From: Phallusia mammillata
Lineage: Eukaryota
NCBI GenBank assembly: GCA_965637545.1
Contig: OZ281495.1
Span: 26,226,001 to 26,290,000, forward strand
Length of the DNA stretch: 64,000 nt
Reading direction: 5' to 3'
Positions 1,683-60,668 of this stretch are shown piece after piece (position 1 is the stretch's first letter; the number at the start of each line of letters is the position of its first letter). The notes beneath the pieces are model-generated. The model saw only the letters and a list, made by a program, of their open reading frames with translations. It had not been told where the DNA came from and did not search any database. A program made the translations under genes and the position numbers.

Positions 1683-4600
1683 ATGTATCGTTCATCCTGC
1701 TTGAATGTGTACGCGGCGATTGTGTTTATCTGGACGGTTTTCTTCGATGGGATCTCCACCGAATACAATCCTGCAAGTAAGACTAAAACTATAATTGCTA
1801 CTATAAGTTCAGCAATTTGAGGCAACTTGACTCGAGCAATTTGAAATATGGGTATATTTTTTTTTCGTCAAAGCAATTTGGCGCTAGGACTTATATTAAA
1901 ACTATGAATGACCGTTTAAAATCACAGTATTAAAGAATTCCACAAACAAAATTTAAAAAATATTGGAAAAAAGTTGCATTCGACTTTCAGCCCAAGCTGC
2001 AATAACAAAAACCTATAAGCGAAAAAACGTGGTAAACGTTAACCTTCGAAACACGATTTAGGGGCGATTATATATGTCTTTTATTGTGTAGTTACGTGCA
2101 AGACTCGGTTTGCCGACTTGAAGCATTCGATCACGAGCGTGATTTGTCCTGCCAACTGCTGGGAGGAAAATCCATCGTTGTGTGGAAATGGGGTCTACAC
2201 AAGCGGCCCGATATGTCTTGCAGCAATGCACGATCAACGGATTGACAGTGAGTTGAACAATATGTGCAAACAAAGTAAATGAACGCAAACGTCTTGTTTT
2301 ATTTGATTATATCGATGGTGAAGTATCTGACTTTCAAACTCACCCGACGACCATTAGTTAAACTTGTGTATTTTAGATGATGGTGGAGTTGTGACGATTT
2401 ATCGCAGCCCAACAGGAAAAAGTGGGTCTCGATACGGCAAAAAGAGCCAAGGTGTGAAAAGTCAAACATGTGCAAAGGGACAATACGGCTACACGTTTTC
2501 AAGTAAGCGCTTTTTCTTAAAGTCATATAAATAGATTTGAAGCCGAGATTTAGTCGGTTCAAAAACTTTGTTCCCCTGGTTAGTTCATTGGGGTTTGATT
2601 TCTCTTGTGTCGTTTCAACGATATCTGACATCGTATTTGTGTAGTTGTGTAGACGAGAGTTTTGTTAAAACAAAGTTTCTTATCTTGAACTGATTTACCC
2701 CCACCTCTCCCGTTGTATAGAGCATGGCCGAAGGCGTATACGATCACATTAGATGAAAATAGGTGAACGTGGAAATATTAGTCGCTTGCGAAAAAATTTC
2801 TTTCCTTTTGCTAGACAGCCAGTTTGTTTAGCTTTATGAAGCATCAGATCTGTAATCTGTAGCACAAGCCAATTCTGGCTGATAAGTTCCGTTCAAAATT
2901 GTTTACAGATGAAAATTTCTGTCCCAAGTCTTTGTGTCCTCTGAAATAAACGGCCTGTCGCCAAAATTCGTTTTGTTAGCTTCAACGCGACACACTGTTT
3001 TATATTTGTCTCGAATTGAACGACTCACCTAACTGGTTTGGCCTTTGGGACCCATAAACTACAACCACTTCAAAAATCAGTGTGACGTGTAAAATATATT
3101 TCAATTTGTGGTTTGTGGCCCGGAATTGATGCAAAATCATAAGTTTTGCCCCTGCTAGTAAATCCTGTGTCCGAGTTGTTTGTAGATACCGTTTGTGTGG
3201 TGTTTTTCTCATTGCATAAATGATTGACGGTTTCACAAACAAATCAACCGATCATTGTTATTGTTTTCTGCAGTGACATGCAAAACAACTGGCGACTGCG
3301 AATTACCGATTACTCATGTCTACTGTCCGGCGGAATGCAAGGGTGCTTCCTACACCTACAGGAGTGGAAAATATTTCACCAACAGCTCTGTCTGCGCTGC
3401 TGCGAAAAAGCGAGGAACGATTTCAGGTTTGTGGAAAGTCAAAAGGTTGATACATTACTGTAAACACATCAATACGTTGTTATCCAAACAGAGAACCCGT
3501 GTGTCTTCAAGCGTGCTTCCGTCGCGCAGACGTGTTTATCAGCAATGCTACCTGGTACAACAACGGAACATGCATTCAATTAAAATATCGTTTCCAAATT
3601 AGAATAAATTGTAAACTACAGAAAACGTTCTATCTTGGACCATGTACGACGTTGTTATTTCGATTCTAAATTTACTTTGGAAACATGTGGTTTTTTGACG
3701 ATCCCAATTTTTTTGTTGTAGATTGCTTAAACATGTTGTTGTACCAAAATTAGGCACCGTTTACAAAAGAGTTTGTTTTTTACAGACGCTGGTGGCAAGG
3801 TTGTCATCTACGCGATGAAGGCAAAGGCGTACAACGGCACAAATACAACAAACAACGATTGGTTTTCGTTCGATGGTAAATTTAGGATTATTGTGGATGG
3901 TTATTAGCGTAGAATTTAATATAAGGCTCTGTCCTACACAATGTTTCTTTCCAACTTACTGGTAATGGTATGGCTGCTAATAGGATAGGCTTAATTACTG
4001 TTTAAAAAAATAATTACGTAATAACTCGTAAACCGTTTAAAATAACCGACTCTGGTTTGATCAATTGTTCTCGTCAAGTTTCTGGAAGTGGTAAAGTTCA
4101 AATTTACACAATAATTTTTTTAATAACAATTTACCTTTGTCAACTTGACCTGAATTTGAATTTTTTAATACCGAAAGTATTCAGTGAGAATGCAAGTAGC
4201 CCAGCATCCTGCGTAACGATTTTACTGTTTTAGATTTCGATGTGTGCTCCTACGTTAACCCGTGTGGAAATAACGGCACATGCGTCGACTTGCTCGCTGA
4301 TTATGGCTGCATGTGTCCTGAAAAGCACACTGGAAGGAACTGTGAGACCGGTAAGTACATTTTATGCAGTATACCTCGTACGCAATTCTTGATTCTTACA
4401 AAGTATTAACGCAATGAATTGAACAAATGAAAAATTTACTGCGCAATGCATTGATTTGTTATATTTTATTCTTTTCGGCAGAATTGCCTTGTTCCCCGGG
4501 AAGTCAAGAATCTGCACTTGCCGAAAAACTGGAGAGTCTCTGTTCACAAGGATGGACTGTGAGTTATCAACATTCCACTTTACATTTCATTACACTAACG

Positions 4601-6657
4601 ATTGTATTTTAGACGATTCAAACGCGCTTTGATGGAAGGGTTAACTTTAAAAGACCCTGGGAAGATTACAAGACTGGATTCGGAAATCCGTCTGGGGAAT
4701 TTTGGCTAGGTTGGTTTTCACATACACAAGATTTTCAAGTTTTTAAATTAAAAAAATCTCGTTTATCACATGCTTCTGCATACGTAGGTTTGGATAAAAT
4801 CCACGCAATGACCCAATTAAAATCCTGCCGAGTTCGATTCGATTTGACAAACATCGGCGAAGAAGAGACATTTGCCGAATACAGGTGAACAAATATAACT
4901 AACCCCATAAAGCTTCTCTTCTCTAAGGAATGTTTGTACATATAGTTAACGCAGTTACCTAAGGTAAGTTAAATCGTGGATAAAATAGTTGCAATATCAC
5001 AATTTCGGACTATTTGTGACCAAAAGTTCGAAACGTGTTGGCCAATTATTTAATGGGAGAATAGAAAGTTTAATTATTTGCAGTGTCAAAATTTGTAAAA
5101 AAGAATATCAGAAGTGTTACCGAATTTATGTAAAAGCATCGTGCCAATAAATGATAAGCTGCAGATAATGCACATTGTTTCGACCTATAAGGTCTCAGGT
5201 CTCTCTATAGACTATAGTGTAGCCATTCAACGGCACTCCAGTTTGCTGAGAGTAACAGGGCAAAAACCCATGCCTCACCTAGTCTGTGCGATGCCACAAC
5301 TGGGCATACACCCCAGAGAAAACTGGCTCACAATGGCCAAGCAACTGCTTGAGAACCAAAGTGAAGTCGGCTCAGTGTCACAGTATCAATGTAAAAGCAT
5401 CGAGCCATTAAGTGATAAGCTACAGACAGTGCCCAGTGGTGGCATCGCAGTGACTATAGGTGAGGCATGGGTTTTTACCCCGTTACTCCCAGCAAACTGG
5501 GGTGCCGTTGAATGGCTACACTAGCCAATGCGGCCGTTCTCTAGTCACCAGCGGCACTGATGATACCTTGTAGGTCGAAACAGTGTGCACTGTCTGTTAG
5601 CGACTTGTTTTAGTCTTATAAGCCCTACCAATCTGATCTATTCCCCGAGACTGTCTCCCCCATTCAGTAAACGGTCCAGAACCCAACAATAACGGTTCAC
5701 CGCGAAAGCCGGATACACCTAACACTGCTTTTGCTAAAAGGGCGTCTCACAGTTTATTATATTATTAGTTATGTCACGTACAACGTCACACCAACGTAAA
5801 CAAATCAGGTCTCTTTACCTGAAAACTACCGCGGCATGTAAAAACAACGTCAAGAAAACGACCGTACACTAGACGCCCACAAGAAGACTGGCCGTCCATT
5901 AACATCACCGTTGATTAATCACCGGCTTACACATTTTTACAAGGTTGCCCGGTACATCCGGGAGCGACAATCGTGCGTGGAAAAAACATGCAACTTTAAC
6001 AAATAAAAATAAACCAAATGAAAACAGCTTTAGGTGGAAATAAGGGATTAGGTCAAAAATAAGAAAAGATGACTTCAAAAATATAACATGTAAGAAATAC
6101 ATTTAAAGGTGAACATAAGTGAAAAGTCATTTGCATAAGTGAAATATATAAAACGCAAGTGCGACATTTACACCAAATAGCATAAACAGATAAAAAAAAC
6201 GTGTCATAAGTTACAAACAAATCAACAAGAAAATTTACAGCGGCTGACATGTGAAACATTTTCGCCACAGACGTTTTGAAGGCCTTACCACTCCAGAGTT
6301 TAACTTTTTTGCAGGTTTTTCGAAATCGGTTCGGAAAGCGAAAACTACAGAATGATCATATCTGGCTATATGACGTCATCAACTCGTCCTGATTTGATGG
6401 ATTATCATAACGGGATGCAGTTCTCCACGTATGACAGGGACAACGACCTTTATTCGTAAGAATACTGATGTTTGCATTAAATTTCAGCTGAGTTATTTTT
6501 TGTTATTTCCAGTGGCAGTTGTGCGCTTGGTGGTGTTGGTGGTGGTGCTGGATGGTGGTACAGCGAGTGCATTCGTGCGAACCTGAATCGGATTCCCCAG
6601 GCCTATTGGAACCCATCAAAGTTTGACGTTGCTGCAATAAGCATAAAGTGCGATTAA
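1683..6657 (+). CDS. g1: secreted SP-LCCL-LCCL-EGF-FReD protein, open ORF of 430 aa
   Basis: Exons 1683-1776, 2092-2247, 2377-2502, 3274-3426, 3786-3875, 4234-4350, 4482-4558, 4613-4709, 4788-4884, 6315-6455, 6513-6657; all GT-AG, total 1293 nt, no internal stop. Signal peptide [25 protein letters not shown]-like [61 protein letters not shown]. FRe[37 protein letters not shown]. Confidence 0.9.
5130..5630. repeat. Foldback / inverted-repeat element in g1 intron 9 (copies at ~41970-42470 and ~20695-21125)
   Basis: Arms AAGCTGCAGATAATGCACATTGTTTCGACCTATAAGG and CCTTGTAGGTCGAAACAGTGTGCACTGTCTG are imperfect reverse complements. There is an internal direct repeat TGTAAAAGCATCG..TGATAAGCT. Confidence 0.7.
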
Positions 6658-8907
6658 CACGGTTTAAATGTTTGACATCAGCCTGATTTTGTTACTCTTG
6701 TTAGCTTTTAACGGAACGTTTATTTTTTCTTAACGTATCGGACAAAAACAGTTAAAACCTAAACTGAACAACGAACTATCATTACGCTAAAATGATTAGC
6801 GAAAAACACAAGTTAAAAGGTCTTCTCAGATGCAAATGCCATTTCTCAATTCTATGTGTAAACGCGTAATATTTTTGTGTCTGTTGATCCTAAAGCACTA
6901 ATAGACAAAAGTCACAAGATCGTGCTTAAAAAAAAACTTTATTACGCTGTTGCTCCCAAACGAGCGAGTATTTATTGTGTTTATGTATGATATGTGAATT
7001 TCTGTTTCATTTTGCTGTACACACTAATTTCAAATCGAACATCTCATTGCGAATTGTTTATTAAATCTTAATCAATTTATATATATCAGAATATTTAAAT
7101 TATCATTTCGTAATGTTCCAGCCTGACTTTTTTAAGAAAGGTCCATTACGCTGTTGATGCCTTTTTACAAAATACGAACTTGTAAATATGTTTTAAATGT
7201 TCTTGAGCTTAAAACAAAATGCACATTGCTGCATCTTCAATTATCAAGTGGATCCTGCGCTTTATCTTCGCAGTGTGATCCAGATTTGCAAATAAGTCCA
7301 CATTTTAAGCGCAAATGTAGAATAATAAAAATTCAGGCCCTTATCCGGCTGGTTTATCAACAAACGTAAGCCTAAACCTGTTCTGTCCCTTTACAACTCT
7401 GGTGTAAACTATCATTTTAATAAAAACCGGTGTGGATTTTGTCGATTGCTTTTCTTAAAATGTCAGCTTTGCAACTTTTGCTGTGTCACTATATCAACTC
7501 ATGGATGAAAGTCTTTCATGTAAAGAACATAAAACTTTTTTATTGTGTCATTTTATCGTTGTGCATGTGGTGATGTACTTACCGTTCACAAATATTGCTC
7601 TTTTCTTTTAAAACACGGTGATTGCAATTTCTCCGTTTACAAGCTGTTAAAATTGGGTTTTATCACAAGTCGACAACTAACATAATTACCACAAGGAAAA
7701 TAAAGGGATGGAATCAGCTCGACAAATGATAGTTTCACGGTAATATATACGTAACCGCAAAACTCAATTGACAGAAACGTACATTCGATTTGCTCATTTT
7801 GCAGTCCATTCCAGGTCATCATTTATGAATACGATGTGGGGAATCTGACCCAACCCAAAAATACAACAATGTAGTGTGCCTTGTTTTCATTATGAACGTG
7901 CAGATACAGTTCCAAAACGCTCCTTAAACAAAGGGTTGAAATAAGGCCGGTTCATGGAACTAAAGTCTCAATTAAAAAAGAACATCTGTAGTGTTTGTTG
8001 AGTAAAGTCGTGCTTGGTTAAGACGTAAGTAAACTTGTGTTCGGATCAGAATTGCAAAATTCGAACCCAACTCGAAAGTACAAGTCTGGACCCGGAACGC
8101 ATTTCAGGTATATATAGCAACTATAGCTAACTAGGGGGATATTTATGTATATTAGCTTGACCCATTGGCTAAGTGCATTTAACTGTTTTCTGTATAGAAA
8201 ATAAGGTAAATTGATTCATGGAGATTGATTAGGTTAGGTTGGGTTATTGTGTTTCTTAAACACAGAAGAATATGAAGCGTGAAACGTGATGTTAACGGTA
8301 TAGGAATGGTAGAAAGCATGAGATTTCAAATTGTGAAAATACGCACTAAAAGATAAGTCTAGAACTGAAAATGTGACGATGGCGAAATGCAATTTTCTTG
8401 CTATCATGTGACAAATTCATTAAGTCGATATTACGCGAGTATGCATTTTGCAAATATCAGAACTCTATTCTGGAATTTTACTCAACCTAAATTAAACCTA
8501 AAGAATTATCGTTGCGCTCCGTTGGATAACAAAGTCAGTGGCCCAGTCACACAAACCAATCTAATATATTTGTACTGTTTCAATAGAACGATTACTGCAT
8601 GTGAACGAATTTGTTGCAATTCAGTTAAGCTCACTGTACTATAGTACTATGGTGTACGACTGGACAAATCAATCAAATTTGGCGTGCAACCCAACAAGTA
8701 ACATCAAGTAGTCTATCACACAAACTAGAACATTGATATTACGGATGACAATGTAGGGTAAAAAGCTTTCAAAAACTTTAAGGACGCCCAAATAAGTAAT
8801 ATCGTGCCACCGCCAAGTAATTTTTTGAGTAAAACTTTTTACCACTTGAATACCGAACCACGTATTACTTCATTCCACGTTTTAGGAAAACTTAAGTTAC
8901 CGTAGAA

Positions 8908-11666: not shown

Positions 11667-14600
11667 ATGAATTCACCGAAAGCTAGTGGCTTGGTGCTGA
11701 TTCTATTATTTGACATCATCACGGTTTTATTGGGACAGTCAGGTAACGCAATGATATTACCAAATGATGACTTAACTGTATTGTTCTATATTTGCATTGT
11801 TTATAATCGGGTGTAAATTAAAGGAAAACGGTTTAACGTTCCAGTAAAATAATTGCAATTATACTGCTGGTTTGAAGTACCGCTAAGAGTTTCATCGCGA
11901 AGGTATATCACATATTTTGGCCTTTTTGTATAATTTTTATTGATTAATATAATTTCTTGGACGGATGCATTGCGCCTAACATGACCCACACACAAAAATG
12001 TACAACGAATTTTAACTAGAAGTATTGCTTAAGTGACGTGCAAGACACAGTTTTCTGACTTGAAGCACTCAATCACGAGCGTGATTTGCCCTGCTAACTG
12101 CTGGGAAGAAAATCCGTCGTTGTGTGGAAATGGGGTCTACACAAGCGGCCCGATATGTCTCGCAGCAATGCACGACCAACAGATTGACAGTGAGTGAAAC
12201 CAAATGCCTGTTGTCGTTTTATAAGAAGCATCATATAAATGAATATTGCTCTAGATTTCGGGGGACTTGTTCAGGTTTTTCGCAATCCGGGCCAAGGAGC
12301 TCATTTGTACGGACAACAAAGAAATGGCGTTCAATCTCAAACCTGCTCTGCGGGCAAATACTCTTACACATTTTCAAGTAAGAATTTGTTAAACAGACAT
12401 AGTGTTTTATTACCTTAAAATTGTGTTAGTGACTTGCAAAACAACTGGCGACAGTGAATTAGCGATTACCCATGTATACTGTCCGGCAAAATGCACCGGT
12501 GCTTCGTACACGTACAAGAGTGGAAAATATTTCACCAACAGCTCTGTCTGCGCTGCTGCAAAAAAGCGAGGAACGATTTCAGGTTCGTGAAATGTTAAAA
12601 CTGTACGAAGATGTTGGTTCGGCAAAAGTTTTTATTTTCAAGCAAAAGCGAATGCCTGCAAGCTTGATTGCTCTTGGCTGATCTGTTTGTCGCTTCTACG
12701 ACTTGATACTAAAACTGTGTGGATTTGTATTTCACTTGCGAAAAACATTTTTAGGAATATTAGGTTGTCTCATCACGATTTTTTTAGCACAATAAAAATG
12801 TGGATCTGTAATTAGCTTGAGAAAACGTGTTTCAGTATTATGAAGGTTGTTTCATTTGTTTTTACAGACGCTGGTGGCAAGGTTGTTATCTATGCGATGA
12901 AGGCAAAGGCGTACAACGGCACAAACACGACCAACACCGACTGGTTTTCGTTCGATGGTAAAACATTTTTTAACGTTTTGCACTATGCTGTAGACAACGA
13001 AAATGTTAAAGACTGTAAATATGGTTTTACTGGTGACGCAAATGCTCCAAGCATTAATTAGCATTTTAGTTTACCTCACTAGCACCAACTTATAATGCAA
13101 TATTAACATGAAAAGGACTCCCGGAACCCACTTGACCGTCGACCCTTAGGTTGCACATTTATGTTTTGCTGTTTTAGATTTTGACGTTTGCTCCTACGTG
13201 AACCCGTGTGCAAATAACGGCACATGCGTCGACTTGTTCGCTGATTATGGCTGCTTGTGTCCAGAAAAGTACACTGGAAGGAACTGTGAGACCGGTAAGT
13301 CGATTTCATAAATATAAATCATAAATTTCATAAATTACCTCGTGCGCACTCGGTTCTTGGTTCTTACGCAGTATTTCGCAATAAATTAGACAATAGGAAA
13401 TTTCACTGTGCATACATTTGTTTGTGATCCTGAGATTAGTTTAAAACCAGAAAGACATTTGTATTCGGGCACAAATGTTTTGTTGCACCTATTTAGTAAT
13501 TACAAATTATTCTTTTTGACAGAATTGCATTGTGCCCCGGGAAGCCAAGAATCTCTACTTGCCGAAAAATTAAAGAGTCTCTGTTCACAAGGATGGGCTG
13601 TGAGTTATCATCACTATACTTTAAATTTCCTCTAGCTAACGGTTGTATTTTAGACGATTCAAACTCGCTTTGACGGAAGTGTTAGCTTTTTAAGAGCCTG
13701 GGAACCTTACAAAACTGGGTTTGGAAAACCGCCCGGGGAATTTTGGCTAGGTTCGTTATGGATTTTGTTGTGTTTAAATCAATTGTATTTTTATTTTTTT
13801 GAAATAAATGTTTCCAGTTACGAAAACTGCCACAATCACGAGCCGATAGGTTTCAACACTAAAGAGGATATTACTAAATCGAATGTTTGAGCCATAATAC
13901 TTCACTGTATTACCTGAATATTTTTCTAAATACTCCCCAAACCTGTTTAATTTTGAAAAATTCTTACCGCTACCAACAGTAAAAGTACACAAATACAGTT
14001 TTCACATAAACAAGAAAAAGTTTTTCACAAGATTTTCATCAAGTTTTGAATTAAAAAGAAATCTTATTTCAACTCATGCTTTTGCATACGTAGGTTTGGA
14101 AAAAATTCACGCGATGACCCAATCAAAATCCTGCCGCGTTCGATTCGATTTGATTTGACAAACCCCGGCGAGGAAGGGAAATTTGCCGAATACAGGTGAA
14201 CAAATAAAACTAACTCCATAAAGCTTCTCTTCTTTAGATAATATTTGGAAAGATTGTTAACGCGGATAACTAAGCTAACACCTACAACACCATACTTGCC
14301 AAAAGTTGTTTGTAAATAAAAGTTTAAAACGTATTTGCTACCTATTCAATAGGCGATAAGAAGGTTGAACTATTTGCAGTGTCGAAATTTGTGAAAAACT
14401 TTATCAAAAGTATTAAAAGCGTTTCGAATCAGTTTGACTTTTTTTGCAGTATTTTTCAAATTGGACCGGAAAGCGACAACTACAGACTAAGCGTTTCCGG
14501 CTATATGACGTCATCAACTCTTGTTGATCGGATGTATTCTCACAACGGGATGCAGTTCTCCACTTACGACAGGGACAACGACCTTTGGGCGTAAGAATGC

Positions 14601-14782
14601 TGATGTTTGCATTAAATTTCAGCTGTGTGATTTTTGTTATTTACAGTAACAAATGTGCGGTGGAAGAAGGAGGTGGATGGTGGTACCACACCTGCTCTAA
14701 TGCCAACCTGAATCGGATTCCCCGAGCGCGTTGGGACACATTATATTTTGACGTTGCGGCAATAAGCATAAAATGCGATTGA
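11667..14782 (+). pseudogene. g2: SP-LCCL-LCCL-EGF-FReD paralog with a single frameshift in FReD exon 9
   Basis: Exons 11667-11742, 12034-12189, 12255-12377, 12430-12582, 12868-12957, 13178-13294, 13523-13599, 13654-13750, 14094-14195, 14450-14590, 14647-14782. Exon 9 is 102 nt versus 97 nt in paralogs because of a 5-nt duplication (GATTTGATTTGA), giving TGA at 14156-14158. All other exons are open. Confidence 0.85.
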
Positions 14783-48148: not shown

Positions 48149-51100
48149 ATGATTTCACCGAAAGCTAGTGGCTTGGTGCTGACTTTCTTATTTGACTTCA
48201 TCGCTGTGTCATTGGGACAGTCAGGTAACGTAATGACATTACCAACTGATGACTTAACTGTATTGTTTTATATTTGCATTGTTTACAATCAGTCGTAAAT
48301 TAAGGAATAACGGTTCGACGTCCTGACAAAACAATTGCTACTGGATAGACGAACCGCTAAGAGTCCCATCGCAAATGTATCACATATATCAACTTTTAAA
48401 ATACTGTTTCAAAAATTCATTTATAGTCAGTACTACTTTCTGGGCGAATGCATTGCGCCTAACATGACCTACACAAAAAATGTACAACGAATTTAAACTA
48501 AAAGTATTGCTTAAGTGACGTGCAAGACACAGTTTTCTGACTTGAAGCACTCGATCACGAGCGTGATTTGCCCGGCCAATTGCTGGGAAGAAAATCTGTC
48601 GTTGTGTGGAAATGGGGTCTACACAAGCGGCCCGATATGTCTTGCAGCAATGCACGACCAACAGATTGATAGTGAGTGAAACCAAATGCCTGTTGTCGTT
48701 TTATAACAGGGGTGGGCAAACTTTTCAGTGCAAGGGCCGCATTCAAAAGTTTATAGACTTATCGGGCCGCATGGTATTTCACCAACGGCCGCCAATTGCT
48801 TGCTTGTTGTTTTGTTTTAAAACAACTGATGTAAAGAATAAGGTTTGTATCATATATATACCATTTAAAGTCGCCGAAGATGCTCTAATTAACAATTTCT
48901 AACTTGTGCACAAGTTTAGCTGAACAGAGCTAACTGTTTATGACGTCATAAACTGTATTGTGACGATTGCAGTGCCCGTTTTTTCGCATTGTTTGCACAT
49001 AATAAGCGGATAAAAAGCCTGGCGCATATGGTTACTAGATTGGTAATCTTTTTTCCAGTCCCACGAAATCTGTTTCAGCAGTTTGAAAATCAAAATATTT
49101 AGCAAAATAGATTGCGGCCGCAGGTTGTGCACCCCTGCGCAAAATTATTACATAGTATATTTTCAGCTTTATGCAAATACGTTTGTTCATGATTGTACAA
49201 ACAGTGGTTGAAACGCTACAATTGTAGGCTAATTGTTTTTTTTTTAAAAACAAGGGTTTGTTGCAACAAAGGCTGAATTTTTTAAGGTGTTTAATTTCTC
49301 CAGCGGTTTCCCAAAATTTGGAAATGGCTATTTTTTGGTATTTAAATGAAACACTTGCGGTCTCTTAAAACTACTTTGCGGTCACCCAAACCAAACCTTA
49401 TAAAAAACTGATCGTGCGGGTACAGATACTGCACATGATATTGGTATCGGCAAGTCACACCCCCGGTATTTTTAAAACTCTGCGCCTGTGCTCATAGTAC
49501 TATTCAGCGTTACTCGGAAACATTTGGCGGGCCGCATGCGGCCCGCGGGCCGTAGTTTGCCCACCCCTGTTTTATAAGAAGCACCATGTAAAAAAAAACA
49601 TTACTCTAGATTCCGGTGGACTTGTTCAGGTTTTTCGCAATCCGGGCCAAGGAGCTCATTTGTATGGAAAACAAAAAAATGGCGTTCAAACTCAAACCTG
49701 CTCTGCGGGGAAATACTCTTACACATTTTCAAGTAAGAATATGTTAAACTGACATAGTGTTTTTATTACCTTAAAATTGTGTCAGTGACCTGCACAACAA
49801 CTGGCGACTGCGAATTACCGATCACCCATGTCTACTGTCCGGCAAAATGCACCGGTGCTTCCTACATGTACACGAGTGGAAAATATTTTACTAACAGCTC
49901 TGTCTGCGCTGCTGCAAAAAAGCGAGGAACGATTTCAGGTTCGTGGAATGTTGAAACTGTACGAAGATGTAGGTGCAGTAAAAGTTTTTTATTTTCAAGC
50001 AAAAACGATTGCCTGCAAGCTTGATTGCTCTTGGGTTGTCTGTTTGTTGCTTCCACGACTTGATACAAAAACTATGTGGTTTGGTAAATCACTTGAGAAA
50101 AGCATTTTTTAGGAATACGAGGCTGCGTTTTTTGTTCAATAAAAAAGTAGATGTGAAATTCGCTCGCGAAAACATGTTTTAGTAATATGAAGTCCTTTCA
50201 CAAACAATTTCTTTTCACAGATGCTGGTGGCAAGGTTGTCATCTATGCGATGAAGGCAAAGGCATACAACGGCACAAACACGAGCAACACCGACTGGTTT
50301 TCTTTTGATGGTAAAACATTTTGTAACGTTTTGCAATAAGCTGTAGACAACGACAATGTTAAAGCCTTTAAATATGGTTATACTGGTGACGCAAATGCTC
50401 CAAGCATCAATTAGCATTTTAGTTTATATTACCAAGACCACACAAATGGTTTACAACTGGATTGAATCAGGGGACCAAATAAATTACCAATATTGAAATA
50501 ACCCTAAACGATCCTTTTTTCAAACAAAAGTTTTGTTGTTTATCAATCAAGCTTATATTCTCACAAACAGTATTCATGAAATTAACAACCGATTGATGTG
50601 GTACTGTTATGCTGTGGTAAAACTTCAATTTTGTAAACAATATTCTCTCACAAACAAAATACAAAACAAAAATGATATAATTCCTCACTAGCACAAACTT
50701 ATAATGTAAAAATAACATCTGTTTGGTGGCCACATATTCACTTCAAAAAGGACCCCCTGAACCTTGCACATCTCTGTTTTACTGTTTTAGACTTCGATGT
50801 TTGCTCCTACGTGAACCCGTGTGCAAATACCGGTACATGCGTCGACTTGCTCGCTGATTATGGCTGCTTGTGTCCGGAAAAGTACACCGGAAGGAACTGT
50901 GAAACCGGTAAGTCAGTTTTGGACCCAGGTTTGTCGTGTTTCTACCTTGCATTCATGCAATATCAATTCAGCGAATGAAAAATGTGATAGTTGCATTGCA
51001 TGCTGAAAAAATAAAATGTACGGTGCATTGATTTGTGGACCACGGATAAGTTTCAGACCATAAGGGCATTTGTTTTTTGTCGCATGATTTTCTTCACACC

Positions 51101-52377
51101 TATTCATGTAGCAATTAAACATTATTCTTTTTGACAGAATTGCCTTGTGCCCCGGGAAACCAAAAATCTGCACTTGCCGAAAAGTTAAAGAGTCTCTGTT
51201 CACAAGGATGGACTGTAAGTTATCATCAGTCTATACTTCACATTGTCTTAAACTAACGATTGCGGTTTAGACGATTCAAACTCGCTTTGATGGAAGTGTT
51301 AGCTTTCGTAGAACCTGGGAAGATTATAAAACTGGGTTTGGAAATCCGTCTGGTGAATTTTGGCTGGGTTGGTTTTTGATTCTTGTGCGGAAATCAATTA
51401 CATATAAGAAATCGGCCACAAACACAAACCGATAGGTTTCAACACTGGAAAGGATATTACTCAATCGAATTTACTAAATCGAGTGTTTGAGTCATGATTC
51501 CTCACTGCAAAACCTGAATATTTTTCTACATACTTCCCAACCGTGTTAAATCTTGAAAAATTATTACCGCTACCAACGGTAAAAGCACACAAATACAGTG
51601 TTCCCATATACGTTTTTCCGAGATTTTCATCAAGTTTTGAATTTAAAAAAAAATCTCATTTAAACACATACTTCTGCATACGTAGGTTTGGATAAAATTC
51701 ACGCGATGACCCAATCAAAATCCTGCCGAGTTCGATTCGATTTGACAAACCCCGGCGCGGAAGAGAAATTTGCCGAATACAGGTGAACAAATATAACTAA
51801 CCCCGTAAAGCTTCTCTTCTCTAGTTAATATTTGGAAACATTGTTAAAGCGGATAACTAAGAACGTTTGATCATAGATAAAATAGTTGGAATATCACAAC
51901 CTGCAAATGTTTGTGATTAAATGTGTAAAAAATATTTGTTAACTATTCAATGGGCGATAAGAAAGTTTGCAATGTCGATATTTGTGAAAATTTTTGTTAC
52001 AAGTTCTAAAAGCCTTCGACTCAAGATTTGTTTTGCAGTTTATTTAGAATCGGCTCGGAAAGCGACAAGTACAGACTGACCATTTACGGCTATATGACGT
52101 CATCAACTCTTATTGATAAGATGGATTATCAGAAAGGGGTGCAGTTCTCCACGAATGACAGAGATAACGACCGTTCTCAGTAAGAATGCTGACGTTTGCA
52201 TTAAATTTCAGCTGAGTGATTTTGGTTATTTACAGTAACAATTGTGCGGTGGTAGATGGAGGTGGAGGTGGATGGTGGTACAACAACTGCGCTCAAGCCG
52301 ACCTTAATCGGAATTCTCATCCTTATTGGCAACCATTTTATTTTGACGTTGCCGCAATTAGCATAAATTGCGATTGA
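48149..52377 (+). CDS. g6: secreted SP-LCCL-LCCL-EGF-FReD protein, open ORF of 422 aa
   Basis: Exons 48149-48224, 48516-48671, 49610-49732, 49786-49938, 50221-50310, 50791-50907, 51138-51214, 51271-51367, 51686-51782, 52039-52179, 52236-52377; GT-AG, total 1269 nt, open. Leader [25 protein letters not shown]. Confidence 0.9.
48707..49569. mobile_element. Non-autonomous hAT (Charlie-like) transposon in intron 2 of g6
   Basis: Perfect 16-bp TIR CAGGGGTGGGCAAACT / AGTTTGCCCACCCCTG and perfect 8-bp TSD TTTTATAA. The empty site is visible in g2 (~12215-12225). Confidence 0.93.
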
Positions 52378-55004
52378 CACGGTTTAAATGTTTGAAATCA
52401 GCCTGATTTTGTTACTTTTGTTAGGCGTTAGTTTGACGCAACATTTCTGTTTTCTTAACGTGTCAGGCAAAAACAGTTAAAACTTAAATTGAACAACGCA
52501 ATATTATTACGCTAAAGTCAAACATGCAAAAGACGCAAAGAAGTCTTATTCAGATGCAACTGAATTCCATAATACAATTCTATGTGTAAACGCTTAATAT
52601 TTGTGTGTCTGTTGAAAGCACTAATAGACCAAAGTCACATTATCGTGCTGAAAAATAAAACTCAATTACGCTGTTGATCCAAAACGGGCGAGAATTGAAT
52701 GTGTTTATGTATGTATGATATGCGATTTTTGTTTTGTAGCTGGAACTTACACAATAAATTCCAATCGAACATTTGACGGCAAATTATTTATTACATCAAA
52801 ATCAATTTATATGTATCAGAATATCCTAATTATCACTTAATAATAAAAATAAGTTCCAGTCTGACTCCTTATAGGAAGGATTCTTTGCGCTGTAGATGCG
52901 TTTTCACACAATCCGAACTTGTACATATGTTTTAAATGTTCTTGAACTCAAAACCAACTGCACTTTGCTGCATCTTCAATTATCATATTAATCCTGCGCT
53001 TTATCTTCGCAGCAGTGTGATTCAGATTTGGAAAACAAGCCCACATTTTAAACGCAAATCCAGAAAAATAAACATTCAGGCCCTTATCCGGCTTGTTTGT
53101 CAACACACATAAGCCTGAATCTGACCTTAAAAGCCCGTTTCGATTTACAACTCTGGTGTAAACTATCATTTTGAAAAAAACGTGTGGAATTTGTCGATTG
53201 TTTATCCTATTGTGCCAGTTTAGAACCGTTTGCTGCGTTTTTTGCACACATATCCACCTGTGGATTAATGTCTTTCATGTAAAGAACATAAATCTGATTT
53301 TATTGTTTCTTTTTATCGTTGTAAATGTGTGGATGTAAGCTTACTTACCGTACACAAATGTTGCTATTTTTCTTTTAAAACGCGGTGATTGCAATTTCTC
53401 TGTTTACAAAATGTTTAAAGTATGTTTTAGCACAGCGCGACAATTAACACAATTACAGTGTAACTCTTGAAGTATAACAATTACCATATCGGTAGAACTC
53501 TTGAAAAATACAGGAATGGAATCAGCTCGACAAATCATAGTTTGACGGTAATATTTAAAAACTCAATTGATAGAAATGTACATTTGGTTTGCTTAATTCG
53601 AAGTACATTCCAGGTACAATCCAAATACAAGCATGTATGTAGCAATTCCAAGTACATTTCAGTTCATCACTTGTGAATACGCTCTGGGAATCTGGCCCAA
53701 CCTTAAAATATAACCATGCATGTAGCATAGTGTGCCTTGCTTTCATTATAAACGTGCCTACAGTTCTAAACGCACTTAAACGCAGCGATGTAATGAGACC
53801 GATTCGTAGAACTAAAGTCCCACTTATGCAAGAACATTTGTAGTGTTTGTTGAGTAAAGACGTGCTTGGTTATGGCGTAAGTTCAACCTGTGGTCGGATC
53901 AGAACTGCAAAAAACGCATTTCAGTTCGTTTTGTTGATATAGGTCCAGCAATTATAACGCCTTGCAAGGGAGATATTTATGTATTTTAGATTGATCCATT
54001 AACTGGGGTCCAATTTGAAAAGTTCTTAGAAAAAATACGGTAAACTGATTTATAGATATTGATTAGGTTAAGTTGAGTTATGTGTTTACAAACTCAGGCG
54101 AACATGAAGTGAGCAACGTGATTTTACCGTAAAGATATAGGAATGATAGAAATCATGACATTCTAAATGGCGAATTTAAGCATTATGGGTCTAGAACTGA
54201 AAATATGACGATGACGAAATCCTATTTTATTGCTCTCATGTGACAAATCTATAAAGTCGCTATTATGTAAGTTTGGATTTTGGTTATATCATCACTCTGT
54301 TCTGGGCTTATACTGAACCCAAATTATCGTTTATCGTTACGACCCATTGGAATACAAAGCCAGTGGTTCAGACACTCACACTGTTTCAATCGAACAACTG
54401 CTGCATGTGAACGGACTTGTTAACGGTTTAATTAAGCTCAATGTTCTATAGCACTATGGTTACGGCTGGACAAACCAATCAAATTTGTCGTACAACACCA
54501 CAAGTAAAACCAAGTGGTTGGATTCTATCACACAAGCTAGAAGTTTGTCACAATGGATGACAATGTAGGGTAAAACTATATTTCGCCACTTTGCCTAGAC
54601 GTTTTTTTTATTTTCTTGTGAAACTATGTCATTTTAGCCTACTATGTTTGCATTTTTTTGCAGAATTGATATTTAATTTTGTTGTAAGGTGTCGCCCCTG
54701 GGTAGTTTGTTTGTTGAGGAATTTGTTGTATAGTGTCAGAAGCAAAAAGAAAATATGAAGATGTATTTTTGCCGTGCATTTCGAAGAGTGAACTTTTTTT
54801 ATAAAACTGAATCAAGTTTATTTGTGTATTTAATATTTGTTTTGGAGCTATTCAATGTTGCTCCACATTTTGGAATAACAAAGTTGAAAAAAAATGATAA
54901 TTAAAGATTTAATATTTATTATTACTGACTAGAAAACAGTAAAGGTTTCGGTGACTGTTGTGACTCTAATTTAGGGTTTATTTAATATTTGCATGTATAT
55001 AGTA

Positions 55005-55239
55005 CAGTGGTCGACAACCGCCGGGCCGCGGCCCGGTACCGGTCCGCGAGGAGTTTGTTACAGAGCCGTATATATTTTCAAGTTAAATGGTATGAAACAT
55101 TTTGCCCATGTATCCCGGGGATGATAAACTATTTTAAGCGTTTTTATTGCTGAATATTTGTGGTTTTTTGAAGACCGGTCCGCGATAAAATTTCACTTTC
55201 AAAAACGGTCCGCAGTGCAAAAAAGGTTGCCGACCCCTG
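55005..55239. mobile_element. hAT MITE
   Basis: Imperfect TIR CAGTGGTCGACAACC / GGTTGCCGACCCCTG and perfect 8-bp TSD ATATAGTA. An empty site occurs in a paralogous spacer near 63345. Confidence 0.88.
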
Positions 55240-55999
55240 ATATAGTACATAAGATATTTAATCAGCTTTTCCAAAGTATGATGCAAAAAGAAGTTTAAAC
55301 AAGAAACATACCTATACATATTTTTAAACGTTTTTAAACGAACAAGATTTAACTCCTAATTAAGCTAGTATATACTGTACGTTACAAACGAAACAGTGAA
55401 GTCTCAACAGTGTTATCAAGCAGGTTTTGTCTTAGATGTTGTTCAATTTCAACCACGTTCCAATAAGCCAACGGCGCCCCGAGTTTGCAGATTCTGCGCG
55501 TTGCAACAAAACGTCAGAGCGTTACCTGCCTTGGGGCCACTTGATTCGCAGGCATTATGTGCTGAAACCACCAGCCATTTTATGAGTACTACTAGTTCAT
55601 CAAAAGATTGTATCGTTAATATGTTTGGTTTGTGGTCCGCTTTTGAAATTGATGTTGAAATTGTTGTCACTGAAGAGTTTTAGGGACGTCCCAAAATGAT
55701 TTGCATTCATATTTGCTTACTATCGTGCATTCGTCAAGATATCCCAAGTAGCAATACATTTTACTCTCCTTCCGTGTTGTTGATGCTATTAGTTATTGCA
55801 TTAATCATTATAAAAGGAAACAGAAAAACCTAAACGATTTTGTTTCACTTACATTAATAAATAGGCTTGAAGCAATTTCATGTGACCAACCAGTTGTGCT
55901 GGCTACATTGTCAAGGTTTTTCATATTGGCTTTTTTTTTCTTTATTCCACCCTGAAATAATGCGGCGAAATGTTTTGATTTGTTTTGTATTAGGCTACT

Positions 56000-57554
56000 C
56001 CAGGAATACTAACATTTGGTTATAGGAATTCACAAAAAATTGCTTTGGTTCTCATATTCATATCTGACTTGATCAGGACTCAATGGGACATACAGGTGAA
56101 GTAACAATACTAGCCACCTGATGTTTTTTATATGTGCACTGTGTTGTTTCAACTAGTGGTAGAAGCGATCCACCAAGTGACTAAGACTAAATCTTGCCGA
56201 ATTAGGTTTAACTTGACTGATTATGCGTCCAAGTTTGTACAAGCAACATACAAGTAAAATCATTAGCCATAGTTTGTGTTCCAAATACTTTTTAATAAAA
56301 GATTGTAACAACTGACTCAATTCTTTCATAATGATAGTGTAACAAGTATTGTTGAATTATTTGACAAAAATCATCCCGCCATATCGATTTAAGCTAGTTT
56401 TCGAAGCTCTTCTGTATGCGACACGGCATAGGATAGGAAAATTAGAAAGTACGACAAGAGCTTACAACGCCAAAGCAGGCTGTAATTTTAGCCTATACTG
56501 TTGCTTGGAGATATGCTTGAGAGATTTGTTCGATTGTGGCGTGCTGTAAAGTAAAGTCGTGCTTGGTTAAGACGGAAGTTAAACTTGTGTTCGGATCAAA
56601 ATTGCAAAATTTGGGCCCAATCGGAAAGTACAAGCCCAAACCCTGTCCGAACCCGAATCTTTTTTTTGGAAGCCTCTTAATGCCCGAAAGTTTAATTGAC
56701 ATGCATATATGCAAGCCTACAAAAGTACATCCGTACATAATATAATAACGAACACATATACATTGGAGAATAATATACAATGGCCTAAAACGCATTTTAG
56801 GTCGGTTTGGTAGTAGGTCCAGCAACTTTAGCTACATGCAAGGAGAATATTTATGTATTTTAGCGTGAGTCATGGGCTAGGTCCAATTAACAAGACTGCT
56901 TTCTGAGAAAAAAATACGGTAAATTGCCCCTATAAGAGCTTTCATGTCGTGAAATTAAAGTAGATAGTCAGATGTTTGTCGTAAATAACCCGACTGATTT
57001 AAATCAAAAAGCAAAACTTGATTTTCATTTAAAACATTTTACGAAATCAACATCACACGGTGGTACTCATGATTTAGTTACTTTGAAATCTATCCAATCC
57101 TTATCACTTGCAGGCTATTTAGCGAACGCCGTTTCGTTATCCTTCATTCTCATGTTCATAAACATGGCTAGAAGTAAACAGACCACTTAGTGATGTAAAG
57201 TCACCCGCATTAAAATCACATTGGCAGCTGGGTATCGGTGTCACGATGGTCTTTTGAAGTGTTGTCTTCACAAACTGTGACAATCTGTTTTATTTCAATA
57301 CCCCTGATCGTCACACTTTTCTTGTATCCAAATTTATTACTTATTGATCTCTAACTATATTAATGTTTTCATCTAACAGAGGGGCCAATTGTGCCAGCAA
57401 CCGGGGTGGTGGCTGGTGGTACGGTCAGTGCGACTGGACGAACCTCAATGCTCTGTGGTGCAACACGTGGCCGTACATTAAGTGGTATGCAGGCGGTCCT
57501 GCTTCAAACAAAAAGGCGTTCAAGGCTGTTTCCATGCAAGTCCGGTGTGACTAA
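56000..57554 (+). pseudogene. g7: fragmented relic of a type-C (g4-like) gene
   Basis: The signal exon has lost its ATG by deletion (~56025-56095). Intron 1 is fused directly to the FReD2 exon (~56160-56252, EAIHQVTKTKSCRIRFNLTDYASKFVQATY). The FReD3 exon is missing and replaced by spacer-type sequence. The last exon 57380-57554 is intact (..GGGWWYGQCDWTNLN..MQVRCD*). Confidence 0.85.
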
Positions 57555-58374
57555 AGACTTGCTTGCTGCATATAGTGTTGTTTTTTGTTACGATCTTCAA
57601 CATGTTCTGCGATAACTTTGCGCATATACAACTGTCCTGTTTCATTGAACAGTCATCGCACACCAGAGCAGCGATTTTTTGCAAATTTTAAGTGTTTAAA
57701 GTATGACGTTTCGAGTGACTATAATATAGTCACTATATTTTAACATGCATAATGGATCACAGATTGCCTTTCAGGCTAGCATTGCCGTAATGTGTTGATA
57801 ATAAAAAACGCACCTCGGAAAAAAGGAACAATCTCTTTGACAAGATGTTTGTATTACAGATGTGGCGTGTTGTAAGCAGGATGTCTGAACGAATTGGGTT
57901 GTACCTATATGCCCAAATTGATTTGAAATGTATGTGGCAAAGAAAAGGTGGTTTTGTATTACCGGGGAGCATACAATGATAAATATATAAAGTATAACTC
58001 GTTTATTATGGCCAATTTAAGTCATTTACAATCGCCTAAAATTAAAATTATTGATTTACATCTAGTTTACTGGCAATGCGCCTGGTTAAAACAACAATCG
58101 AATGTAGTTTTTTGTGCTTATAGCTCCTCGGTAAAATTACTGACTTTTACACGGCATAAACATTAGGTTTCGAAGCTTATATTCTTTCCAATTAGTTGAG
58201 GTACTTCTTTTTGAGGGATGTTAGTTTTTGCCCCCCCCAAAAAAAAAAACGAAAAAACTTTTCAGCCAGGCCAGAATGTCAACGGGAAACGCAGTACTAG
58301 TTCGTGTTTTCTTTTGCTTGAAGGTAAAACAAGTTTCATAATTTTTCTCATCCGAAACAAGGTCTCTTCTGATC

Positions 58375-60668
58375 ATGTATCGTTCATCCTGCTTGAATGT
58401 GTACGCGGCGATTGTGTTTATCTGGACGGGTTTCTTCGATGGGATCTCCACCGAATACAATCCTGCAAGTAAGACTAAAACTTTAATTGTGGCTGCTATC
58501 TGTTCTATAGGACAGACCAAATTATTTTTTCAAAATAAACTTTACAGCAATAATTTACAATAAAGTGTTGCGTGAATTTACAAGTATTTCAAACATATAA
58601 AATAAAACGGTAAAGTGGCTTGATAGATATTATAATCCAATCAACATTTTGTCGCATATAGTATACTTCATGTATAATTTGTAAACGTTACTCTTTTGTT
58701 ATGAACATACAAGTCAATAATTGTGGGTATAGTTTTTCCGTTTATACCCGAAAACAATGCACATCAGTGTTAAAACGTTTTATAACCAGGAATCGGCTTG
58801 CATTTTCCTGTCAAGACTACTTCATGCGGTTATCAATGGTTTATATTAAACTGAACGGAGAAACGAACGGAAAAAAAGAAGTGTAATCTTAATTACTTGT
58901 TGCACATTGGCCACACGTCCGAAATTGTGAGACCGGCAAGAATCCTAAAGTACAAACCAAAAACCCGGCCCTGTTTTTTTTTAACTAAACAATGTCCGCA
59001 TTAGGCCGTAAAATAATCGGTATTAGGTCAAACGCATTGCAGTGTGAAGTAGATACCGAAATAAGCCTGTTTAAAGCAAACATTAGTTGAAAACCCGGTT
59101 TGAACATGCGCGGTCCTCGGATTGCAAACTCTTTGGTTAACAGTTTTACTTTTATAGATTTTGACGTTTGCTCCTACGTGAACCCGTGTGCAAATAACGG
59201 CATTTGTGTCGACTTGCTTGCTGATTATGGCTGCTTGTGTCCGGACAAATACACTGGAAGAAACTGTGAAACCGGTAAGTCGATGTTAGAGACTACTCCT
59301 GCGCAATTGGACATTGATTCTTACACGGTATTTACGCAATGAATTGGACAAATAGAAAATGTATTGTCCAATGCATTGATTTGTAGTCCTGGGATTAGTA
59401 AAAACCAGAAATACATTTGTATTCGGTCACATAAGTTTTGTTGCACTTATTAAGCAGTTAAGAATATTTTTTTGGGCAGAACTGCTTTGTTCCCCGGGAA
59501 GCCAAGCATCCCCACTTGCCGAAACTCTGAAGAGTCTCTGTTTACAAGGATGGACAGTGAGTTATAATAATTCCATTTTACATTTCCCTAAACTAATAAT
59601 TGTATTTTAGACGATTCAAACTCGCTTTGATGGAAGTGTTAGCTTCAATAGACCCTGGGAAGATTACAAAACTGGATTTGGAAATCCGTCTGTAGAATTT
59701 TGGCTCGGTTTGTTTTTGATTCTTTTGTTCAACCGAAATAGTAGCTTATTTCTTCGTTAAAAAATAGTTTTCCGTAAAAAAGTGACACGAACACAAACCG
59801 ACAGGTTTTAACACTAAGGGAGATATAGCTTACTAAAACAAACTTTTAACCACTATTCATCACTGTAATACCTGAATATATTTCTTAATACTCCCCAACC
59901 CTGTTAAAATTTTGAAAATAATGATCCCGTTTAACCACATGCATCTGCATACGTAGGTTTGGAAAAAATTCACGCAATGACCCAGTCAAAACCTTGCCGA
60001 GTTCGATTCGATTTGACAAACATCGGCGAGAAAGAGACATTTGCCGAATACAGGTAAACAAATATAACTAACCCTATAAAGCTTCTCTTCTCCTGTTAAT
60101 ATTTGTAAACAATGTTACCGCGGATACTTAAAGTAAGGTAAACCGTGGATAAAATAGTTGCATAAAAATAGTTAAGCAATATCACAACTTGCGAAAAAAT
60201 GTGATTAAAAGTTTAAAACGTATTTGCCAACTATGTAATGGGCGATAAGAAAGTTTGACAATTTGCAGTTTCGAAGTTTGTGATAAGTTTTATTAGAAGT
60301 TTTGAAAGTCTTTCGAATCAGAAGTTTTACTCTTTTATAGTTTTTTCGAAATCGGCTCGGAAAGCGACAACTACAGACTGAACATTACCGGTTATATAAC
60401 GTCATCAACTCTTGTTGGTCGGATGAACTATCACAACAGGATGCAGTTCTCCACGTACGACAGGGACAACGACCTTCGCACGACGTAAGAATGCTTATGT
60501 TTGCATTAAACTCCAAGTGATTTTTTTTCCAGTCACAATTGTGCGGAGAGTCGTGGAGGTGGATGGTGGTACAGTAGTTACGGACGTGCCAACCTTAATC
60601 GGAACCTTCAGGCTTATTGGAGCCCATCACTATTTGACGTTGCCGCAATAAGCATAAAGTGCTATTGA
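58375..60668 (+). CDS. g8: LCCL-less SP-EGF-FReD paralog, open ORF of 253 aa
   Basis: Exons 58375-58468, 59158-59274, 59480-59556, 59611-59707, 59957-60053, 60341-60484, 60533-60668; total 762 nt, in frame (phase-1 exon 1 to phase-1 EGF exon). No LCCL exons lie between 58469 and 59157. Confidence 0.85.

Follow-up and report, generated by a model that had tools for sequence, protein, structure and literature searches.

A tandem gene cluster on contig OZ281495.1

We analyzed a stretch of 64,000 nucleotides from the ascidian Phallusia mammillata (GenBank assembly GCA_965637545.1, contig OZ281495.1, positions 26,226,001 to 26,290,000 of the forward strand), hereafter the window, which holds a tandem cluster of genes whose predicted secreted products combine two LCCL domains, an EGF domain, and a C-terminal fibrinogen domain (FReD). 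All coordinates are window positions. The window is ~38% G+C and is made of repeated plus-strand units; self-alignment returned many matches of 0.3 to 3.4 kb at 66 to 94% identity, with repeats far above chance. Gene copies (g0 to g8) were mapped by tblastn with the exon peptides of g1, and exon borders were then projected by DNA alignment and translated. The splice sites of g1 were read by eye, and all internal boundaries were checked for AG/GT and phase.

All fibrinogen-bearing units retrieved by tblastn lie on the plus strand. There are nine in the window, including g0, which is cut by the window edge (before 1683), and the fragment g7. Eight units (g1 to g8) fall within 1683-60668, and half of these (g2, g3, g5, and g7) are broken. 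The full tally comprises three intact full-length genes (g1, g4, and g6), one intact short gene (g8), one copy with a single lesion (g2), three pseudogenes or fragments (g3, g5, and g7), and the edge-cut g0. An initial annotation had described nine same-strand copies of an 11-exon gene between 1683 and 60668. The shared strand was borne out, but eight units lie inside that range and the ninth is reached by counting g0 or g7. Likewise, the 11-exon structure is intact in g1, g4, and g6, while g8 has seven exons, g2, g3, and g5 carry lesions, and g7 is a fragment.

The first intact gene, g1 (1683-6657), has 11 exons (1683-1776, 2092-2247, 2377-2502, 3274-3426, 3786-3875, 4234-4350, 4482-4558, 4613-4709, 4788-4884, 6315-6455, and 6513-6657; numbered E1 to E11) with consistent phases and AG/GT at all internal boundaries. 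Its open reading frame (ORF) of 1,293 nt encodes 430 amino acids in the order signal peptide (first-exon type E1a), LCCL, LCCL, EGF, and a fibrinogen domain that we call A-type. The second, g4 (31557-37406), also has 11 exons (31557-31632, 31797-31952, 32014-32136, 32199-32351, 32423-32512, 35001-35117, 35405-35484, 35550-35646, 36136-36232, 36621-36791, and 37232-37406), AG/GT at all boundaries, and an open frame of 444 amino acids; it has a first exon of a second type (E1b) and a first LCCL domain like those of g2 and g6, and its EGF and fibrinogen domains are of a divergent B-type. The third, g6 (48149-52377), encodes 422 amino acids in 11 exons (48149-48224, 48516-48671, 49610-49732, 49786-49938, 50221-50310, 50791-50907, 51138-51214, 51271-51367, 51686-51782, 52039-52179, and 52236-52377), namely, an E1b signal peptide, LCCL, LCCL, EGF, and an A-type fibrinogen domain. 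The short gene g8 (58375-60668) has an intact seven-exon ORF (58375-58468, 59158-59274, 59480-59556, 59611-59707, 59957-60053, 60341-60484, and 60533-60668) for 253 amino acids, comprising an E1a signal peptide, EGF, and a fibrinogen domain. Here, E1 joins E6 directly, and E2 to E5, which encode both LCCL domains, are deleted; the frame is retained because both introns are phase 1. Intron 1 of g8 aligns to intron 5 of g5 (58509-59728 versus 40262-41408).

The remaining units are disrupted to different degrees. Copy g2 (11667-14782) has 11 exons beginning with E1b and intact splice sites, and its sole lesion in the DNA alignment lies in E9 (14094-14195), where 5 nt are duplicated in tandem and break the frame, TTCGATTCGATTTGATTTG compared with TTCGATTCGATTTG in the other copies. 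The duplication may have inactivated the gene very recently, or it may be a polymorphism or an error of the assembly. The pseudogene g3 (18790-23463) has several lesions: an AT donor at E1, an AA acceptor at E2, loss of the 5' part of E5, a 5-nt deletion in E6, and an in-frame stop in E8. The pseudogene g5 (38594-43493) is without E1 and E2, has a GC donor at E3, and carries a -1 frameshift in E7; over its 3' part (41554-44886), it shares 93.7% identity with g1 (4714-8095). The self-alignment gave nothing in g5 38098-38548 to match g1 1575-2331, and a short tandem repeat (~38150-38280), one frame of which repeats GFGPGSGRVRA, sits at the expected place of the missing exons. The B-type fragment g7 (56159-57551) retains E9 and E11 only (tblastn matches at 56159-56254 and 57405-57551); its DNA aligns to g4 36139-36553 and 36943-38166, with the E10 stretch absent. 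Finally, g0 (60-858) consists of E10 and E11 of a B-type gene cut by the window start (tblastn matches at 60-236 and 700-855), with about 91% amino-acid identity to the same exons of g4; at the DNA level, 1-382 aligns to 36554-36942 and 513-1574 to 37063-38097.

Open frames of at least 75 amino acids outside the units look non-coding, giving no sign of extra genes between the copies, and Pfam had no match for either of two such frames, which lie in a g1 intron and downstream of g8. An assembly artifact is unlikely for g1, as contigs from a public DNA run, which may be the assembly's own sample, match unique g1 introns and exons with 0 to 4 differences.

Domain architecture and exon organization

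Pfam analysis of the stop-free frames of g1 retrieved, successively on the plus strand, LCCL (frame 2043-2279, E = 8e-08), LCCL (3228-3599, E = 7e-05), EGF (4200-4406, E = 2.5e-05), and Fibrinogen_C in three frames (4613-4885, E = 1.6e-15; 6304-6456, E = 4e-08; 6481-6654, E = 0.04). The curated LCCL cutoff (PF03815, 22.6 bits) is passed twice in g1, by exon 2 (32.8 bits) and exon 4 (23.4 bits). The LCCL family framework consists of the cysteine pattern C...CPxxC...SxxCxAAxH followed by a GG-x-V strand, and both features are present in the translations of LCCL1 and LCCL2.

Two full-length relatives have the same organization. These P. mammillata database proteins, A0A6F9DDD3 (422 amino acids) and A0A6F9DDK6 (427 amino acids), are named "ficolin-2-like" and share with the cluster the LCCL-LCCL-EGF-FReD order and an E1b-type signal peptide. 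Both are 82 to 84% identical to g6 and about 75% identical to g1, differ from every window copy and may be other paralogues, and are unreviewed, automatically named, and unstudied. In A0A6F9DDD3, LCCL scores 79.6 bits (E = 2e-22) over two stretches and Fibrinogen_C (PF00147) scores 142.5 bits (E = 2e-41), with EGF also present. Pfam results for the g1 exons and for these two relatives thus confirm the domain order proposed in the initial annotation.

In full-length copies, E1 encodes the signal peptide, each LCCL domain occupies two exons, EGF one, and the FReD five. Each of exons 1 to 6 ends in phase 1, followed by phases 0, 1, 2, and 2 at the ends of the later exons; with the first six uniform in phase, an entire domain can drop out or be exchanged without disturbing the frame. 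The N-terminal exons are hydrophobic and, by inspection, read as signal peptides of two types, with E1a used in g1, g3, and g8 and E1b in g2, g4, and g6. The latter type was exposed by the N terminus of A0A6F9DDK6, which matches 11667-11741 and 48149-48250. E1b precedes exon 2 by 290 to 370 nt in g2 and g6 and by 164 nt in g4. Local DNA alignment found no E1a-like first exon upstream of g2, g4, or g5; an E1a relic lies upstream of g6 (47283-47358, plus strand; 61% identity by tblastn), with no in-frame ATG nearby. No E1b relic was found in intron 1 of g1, g3, or g8. A conserved cluster of N-glycosylation sequons, YNGTNTTN, marks the end of the second LCCL domain in exon 5 of all copies (e.g., 3825-3850).

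Transcription of the family

Searches of public sequencing runs retrieved DNA-like runs that contain 36 to 84% of the sequence words and small putative RNA runs (labeled "RNA?") that contain 0 to 9%. Runs were aligned at 92% identity to the g1 region (1500-6900) only. There, RNA contigs cover exon bins only, plus a high-copy repeat, and they end or join at predicted borders: 1776 (the exon 1 donor), 2245/2247, 3274, 3426 to 3786, and 4233/4234. Five splice sites are supported in this way (the E1 donor and the E2-E3, E3-E4, E4-E5, and E5-E6 junctions), mostly by contigs from g2- or g6-like copies. The E2-E3 contig fits g6 best, having two differences from g1 that are also found in g6 and a loose end that matches 49609-49637 with one mismatch. 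The spliced E5-E6 contig fits g2. Two short contigs fit g1, one across E4-E5 with two differences and one in E6 with none, where all other copies differ at at least 5 positions.

Other RNA contigs differ from the window copies. Those joining E3 to E4 match no window copy exactly; exon 4 contigs (3274-3373) differ at 5 to 7 positions and have a g2-type exon 3 end. An exon 1 contig (1667-1776) has 7 differences from g1, where g8 differs at 3 and g3 at 5. RNA contigs unlike any window copy point to further expressed paralogues or divergent alleles elsewhere.

Taken together, the family is transcribed and spliced as modeled, with direct support for g6 and partial support for g1. For the four genes singled out in the initial annotation (g1, g4, g6, and g8), the evidence is uneven: spliced contigs are g6-like and g1-like, and none of those aligned to the g1 region is specific to g4 or g8.

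Conserved and variable parts of the proteins

We calculated pairwise non-synonymous (dN) and synonymous (dS) divergence between window copies for each region by the method of Nei and Gojobori. In LCCL1, LCCL2, and EGF, dN/dS is 0.06 to 0.25 among intact copies and rises to 0.45 when a pseudogene is in the pair; for LCCL2 and EGF of A-type copies, dN is 0.02 to 0.05. The LCCL and EGF exons are thus under purifying selection. In exons 10 and 11, which form the C-terminal half of the FReD, dN/dS is 0.4 to 0.65, with dN of about 0.2 and a dS (0.3 to 0.45) similar to that of LCCL and EGF. Comparison of non-synonymous and synonymous counts in exons 10-11 with those in LCCL plus EGF was significant in all five pairs (Fisher p = 0.0001 to 0.03; odds ratios of 2.6 to 7.9).

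Changes in the FReD cluster in a 12-codon loop of exon 10, in the loop between the P-domain cysteines, and at residues flanking the second of these cysteines. The residue directly after the second loop cysteine, which aligns to the His of the M-ficolin motif CHASNLNG, has seven states in eight A-type sequences; among the copies, it can be I, A, S, F, T, R, G, or D. In tachylectin-5A and ficolins, the His after the second loop cysteine and the neighboring loops, with the Tyr-Ala and Tyr of the following loop, line the acetyl-binding pocket. Thus, the contrast drawn initially between a conserved LCCL/EGF part and a variable FReD holds, with a ratio of non-synonymous to synonymous differences 2.6 to 7.9 times higher in exons 10-11 than in LCCL plus EGF and with pocket positions as the most variable columns.

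Around these positions lies a conserved framework composed of the Ca2+ motif, the Cys-Cys loop, GGWWY...NLN, and the last strand. The Ca2+ motif FSTYDRDND is intact in g1, g2, g5, and g8 and has one substitution in g3, g4, and g6. Both P-domain loop cysteines are kept in g1, g4, g6, A0A6F9DDD3, and A0A6F9DDK6. The loop after NLN is longer in the B-type g4, and the loop following the pocket His position is ~12 residues shorter in A-type copies. All copies of both types have two extra cysteines, one in K-S-C-R-V-R-F of exon 9 (e.g., 4822-4830) and one in a C-terminal K-C-D or R-C-G (e.g., 6649-6654). These family-specific residues could form an extra disulfide or link subunits.

The excess of amino-acid changes in the FReD could also mean that the whole family is losing its function, with the surviving open frames being future pseudogenes. 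The four broken units in the range would be expected under such decay, as would the missing conserved cysteine of g8 and the apparent transcription of the broken g2. We consider decay highly improbable, as purifying selection on the LCCL/EGF exons is clear between intact copies, spliced transcripts exist, and the FReD framework motifs are intact in g1, g4, and g6 and in the two full-length database proteins, for which no genomic contig is on record.

Relatives and comparison with known systems

An exhaustive HMMER search with the 51-amino-acid exon 2 peptide retrieved 75 proteins, mostly multi-LCCL proteins of amphibians, Clavelina, Ciona, and amphioxus. Only 2 of the 75 also hold a FReD: A0A6F9DDD3 and A0A8J9YIU5 of Branchiostoma lanceolatum. 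When A0A6F9DDD3 was used as the seed of a protein search, only FReD-only or EGF-FReD proteins were found outside Phallusia, and a word-indexed search with its LCCL-EGF half returned the two Phallusia proteins only. The nearest ESM Atlas clusters are EGF+FReD proteins of molluscs, echinoderms, and cnidarians, none with LCCL; a search of the same atlas with a single 50-amino-acid LCCL exon gave scores of at most 0.74. Among the proteins searched, Phallusia and a single amphioxus gene model were the sole sources of two LCCL domains combined with a fibrinogen head.

A full-text literature search, including ficolin, ascidian, and amphioxus contexts, yielded no paper describing an LCCL-FReD family, in agreement with the initial impression that the architecture is not that of a named family. 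The term "undescribed" used at that time stands as regards published studies, although the proteins were already public as the two unreviewed "ficolin-2-like" entries.

Despite this database name, membership in the ficolins was ruled out by the lack of a collagen-like region: g1, g4, g6, A0A6F9DDD3, and A0A6F9DDK6 have neither a collagen match (PF01391) nor a Gly-X-Y run. Ficolins of vertebrates and of Halocynthia roretzi resemble the cluster proteins in being secreted and in having a C-terminal FReD with the Ca2+ motif and Cys-Cys loop. Where ficolins have the collagen-like region with its MASP-binding stalk, however, the cluster proteins have LCCL-LCCL-EGF, and their FReD is shortened at both ends.

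Membership in the Biomphalaria FREPs was also ruled out, as Pfam found no IgSF domain. In FREPs, the fibrinogen (FBG) domain is preceded by one or two IgSF domains with an interceding coiled coil, whereas mollusc FReMs, such as Biomphalaria Bg40437, have an EGF-like region directly upstream of FBG (PMC7588048). An EGF exon likewise precedes the FReD in all cluster copies, and g8 has exactly the EGF-FReD architecture. Unlike the cluster, neither FReMs nor the mollusc, echinoderm, and cnidarian EGF+FBG clusters have LCCL. Snail FREPs and mosquito FBN/FREP proteins resemble the cluster as lineage-specific tandem FReD expansions in which constant parts stand beside variable ones and partial genes are numerous (PMC7588048). 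In snail FREPs, the partner is IgSF with a coiled-coil spacer and the IgSF part is diversified; in the cluster, the partner is LCCL-EGF and the FReD varies.

The LCCL domain is shared with cochlin, CRISPLD1/2, DCBLD, Limulus factor C, and the multi-LCCL proteins of Ciona, Clavelina, and amphibians, none of which has a FReD; by their LCCL domains, the cluster proteins come closest to the multi-LCCL proteins of other ascidians and of amphibians. Apart from the Phallusia proteins, LCCL (two copies) and Fibrinogen_C were found together only in the B. lanceolatum "ANGPTL1" A0A8J9YIU5, which differs from the cluster in having no EGF, a FReD truncated at profile position 123, and an internal duplication that is exact. 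LCCL and FReD occur together in none of its 119 best listed relatives, and this single automatic gene model is doubtful. The nearest published combination is that of the Plasmodium CCp/LAP proteins, secreted multi-lectin proteins with LCCL and a NEC module (an N-terminal fibrinogen sub-domain) (PMC2211786); they contain the NEC piece only, their other domains are ricin, discoidin, and levanase, and they are unrelated in descent.

Tunicates are the group most closely related to vertebrates. To our knowledge, ficolins and v-Themis are the only well-studied tunicate fibrinogen-domain proteins. Like the cluster products, v-Themis of Ciona is an ascidian fibrinogen-like protein of variable sequence, and it is used in recognition; the polymorphic v-Themis genes lie inside intron 1 of the PKD1-like s-Themis gene on the opposite strand (PMC7018956). 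A cluster of ascidian FReD proteins with a variable head might by this precedent serve as a self/non-self determinant in fertilization or allorecognition, comparable to v-Themis of the vitelline coat (PMC7018956). Single nested genes and allelic hypervariability distinguish the Ciona system, and neither feature was seen in the cluster. The window contains no coding-looking minus-strand frames of at least 75 amino acids outside the genes that would suggest a nested arrangement, a search whose scope does not extend to short exons or to a host gene exceeding the window in size. In addition, DNA-run contigs over g1 exons 10-11 differ from the window by 0 to 4 letters in 237 to 436 bases (again in a run that may be the assembly's own sample), and the variation seen lies between paralogues, not alleles. 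A role in fertilization or allorecognition is thus very unlikely.

Proposed function

Expansions of FReD families in single lineages, with unusual partner domains, are common. Expanded FReD families, including snail FREPs, mosquito FBNs, and amphioxus FREPs, are a recurring invertebrate answer to the lack of antibodies. In cochlin, an LCCL fragment acts in innate defense and pathogen entrapment (PMC7526977). By analogy with the expanded FReD families and with bacterial trapping by the cochlin LCCL (PMC7526977), we favor, with moderate confidence, an interpretation of the cluster as a lineage-restricted, tandemly duplicated, birth-and-death family of secreted mosaic FReD recognition lectins, for which humoral pattern recognition would be the most likely function.

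As humoral recognition molecules, the cluster proteins would act through two parts. The variable FReD pocket may give each paralogue its own ligand specificity, probably for surface patterns of the glycan or acetyl-group type, with Ca2+ taking part in binding. The constant LCCL-LCCL-EGF part would provide a shared function; for instance, it may bind in a second way by which microbes are entrapped or aggregated, or it may dock to the matrix or cells of the host. Were both ends to bind microbial or self ligands, these proteins would represent a new type of two-headed recognition molecule. The cluster is a fibrinogen-domain family with an undescribed partner module (LCCL-LCCL-EGF), and we infer its role to be one of recognition.

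Several observations weigh against this interpretation. The Pfam FReD match of A0A6F9DDD3 spans only profile positions 41 to 184 of 221, and after NLN the sequence is shorter by about 20 residues than that of ficolins and solved FReDs. Because of this shortened stretch and the non-conserved pocket His, the canonical acetyl-binding site is not intact; g8 has also exchanged the second pocket-loop Cys for Tyr. Lectin avidity usually needs multimers, and no collagen or coiled-coil multimerizing region is present. At the level of selection, dN/dS for the FReD as a whole is below 1 and is hence no demonstration of positive selection; the value of 1.2 obtained for the 12-codon loop of exon 10 pools non-independent pairs and carries no significance test. 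Relaxed constraint accounts for the FReD asymmetry as well as diversifying selection does. Finally, half of the copies are dead, and E1, E3, E7, E8, E10, and E11 of g1 are without RNA coverage at the identity used.

Structural comparison bears on a further possibility, in which the proteins form a matrix, tunic, or developmental signaling family. In the AlphaFold model of A0A6F9DDD3, the FReD is modeled confidently only at residues 255 to 422 (pLDDT 80 to 96); in the LCCL/EGF half (residues 2 to 248), pLDDT is below 50 and the alignment is poor. The best structural matches of the modeled FReD are the heads of M- and L-ficolin (TM of about 0.7; 36 to 37% identity), in line with the favored recognition reading, and Foldseek also matched the heads of ANGPTL and tenascin besides ficolin (E = 1e-17). 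Indeed, by both sequence and fold, the FReD matches angiopoietins, ANGPTL2/6, tenascin, and MFAP4 as well as it does ficolins. LCCL-EGF could then anchor the protein in the matrix, as in cochlin, which binds sulfated glycosaminoglycans (PMC9987951), and the FReD would act as a head that binds proteins, like those of tenascin or angiopoietin-like proteins, with its own variability reflecting weak constraint. The lost acetyl-pocket residues and the FReD dN/dS below 1 are in line with such a role. Matrix and signaling FReD proteins are, however, usually single-copy and conserved and do not form fast-turnover tandem clusters rich in pseudogenes, and the variation in the cluster is centered on the pocket loops while the Ca2+ motif and framework are fixed. 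We therefore regard a matrix or signaling role as fairly unlikely.

Mosaic history of the cluster

Three stretches of the window (1-1797, 36554-38166, and 57133-58489) align with each other. From this alignment, a two-gene block, in which an A-type gene with E1a comes after a B-type gene, was duplicated three times, as g0-g1, g4-g5, and g7-g8. Divergence is uneven along single genes. Between g4 and g2/g6, dS is 0.24 in LCCL1, about 0.65 to 0.68 in LCCL2, and saturated in EGF and FReD; by this measure, g4 is a chimera that joins LCCL1 exons resembling those of g2/g6 to a divergent EGF and FReD. Between g1 and g5, dS is 0.018 in exons 10-11 and 0.38 in EGF. Exon 3 occurs as two types (g1/g5 versus g2/g3/g4/g6) with 50% protein identity, compared with about 90% in the neighboring exon 2. 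The patchwork dS of g4 and g1/g5, together with the two exon 3 types, indicates unequal crossing-over or gene conversion between copies. The cluster is thus subject to turnover by duplication of two-gene blocks, exchange, transposon insertion, and decay, and about half of its units are pseudogenes.

The two exon 3 types, two first-exon types, and two FReD types occur in differing combinations. Together with phase-1 exons and exchange between copies, this could be taken as a germline cassette system in which pseudogenes serve as sequence donors and new LCCL/EGF/pocket combinations arise continually, a reading that we consider quite improbable. If true, individuals or populations would differ in their repertoire of a chordate-lineage recognition molecule without counterpart elsewhere. 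The cluster displays small-scale exon shuffling: a gene that has lost two domains in frame (g8), a chimera (g4), two kinds of signal-peptide exon, and pseudogenes of recent origin stand next to each other, making it a good natural case for studying the origin of mosaic proteins.

Mobile elements and other repeated sequences

A degenerate non-LTR (long terminal repeat) retrotransposon (LINE) lies between g3 and g4 on the plus strand (25574-30502). It begins with an ORF1-like frame that has a weak zinc-finger match, followed by an apurinic-type endonuclease (Exo_endo_phos, E = 9.7e-12), a reverse transcriptase (RVT_1, E = 8.6e-12), and zf-RVT by Pfam. These domains fall in separate frames, and the element is thus broken by frameshifts. 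A second insertion, in intron 5 of g4 (32517-34582, plus strand), is an LTR-like non-autonomous element with terminal direct repeats of ~438 bp (32517-32954 and 34155-34582) at 89 to 97% identity. It is without a pol gene, and its interior has at least six tandem 48-nt units encoding a CDVPVERVPPDEFCR-like peptide.

The high-copy interspersed repeat in intron 9 of g1 (5120-5662) has self-matches at 41974-42279 in g5 and, inverted, at 20800-21125 in g3. Its word depth in the DNA-like run is 40,000 to 115,000, compared with about 100 to 2,000 beside it, and in the contigs of RNA runs it occurs with many different flanks. The inverted copy in g3 lies directly upstream of the truncated exon 5.

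Several-kilobase stretches 3' of the A-type genes are kept between units at 66 to 87% DNA identity in the self-alignment (6700-8763, 14800-17602, 23500-25270, 43500-46537, 52400-55938, and 60700-63899) and are without convincing open frames; they may represent shared regulatory or old repeat sequence.

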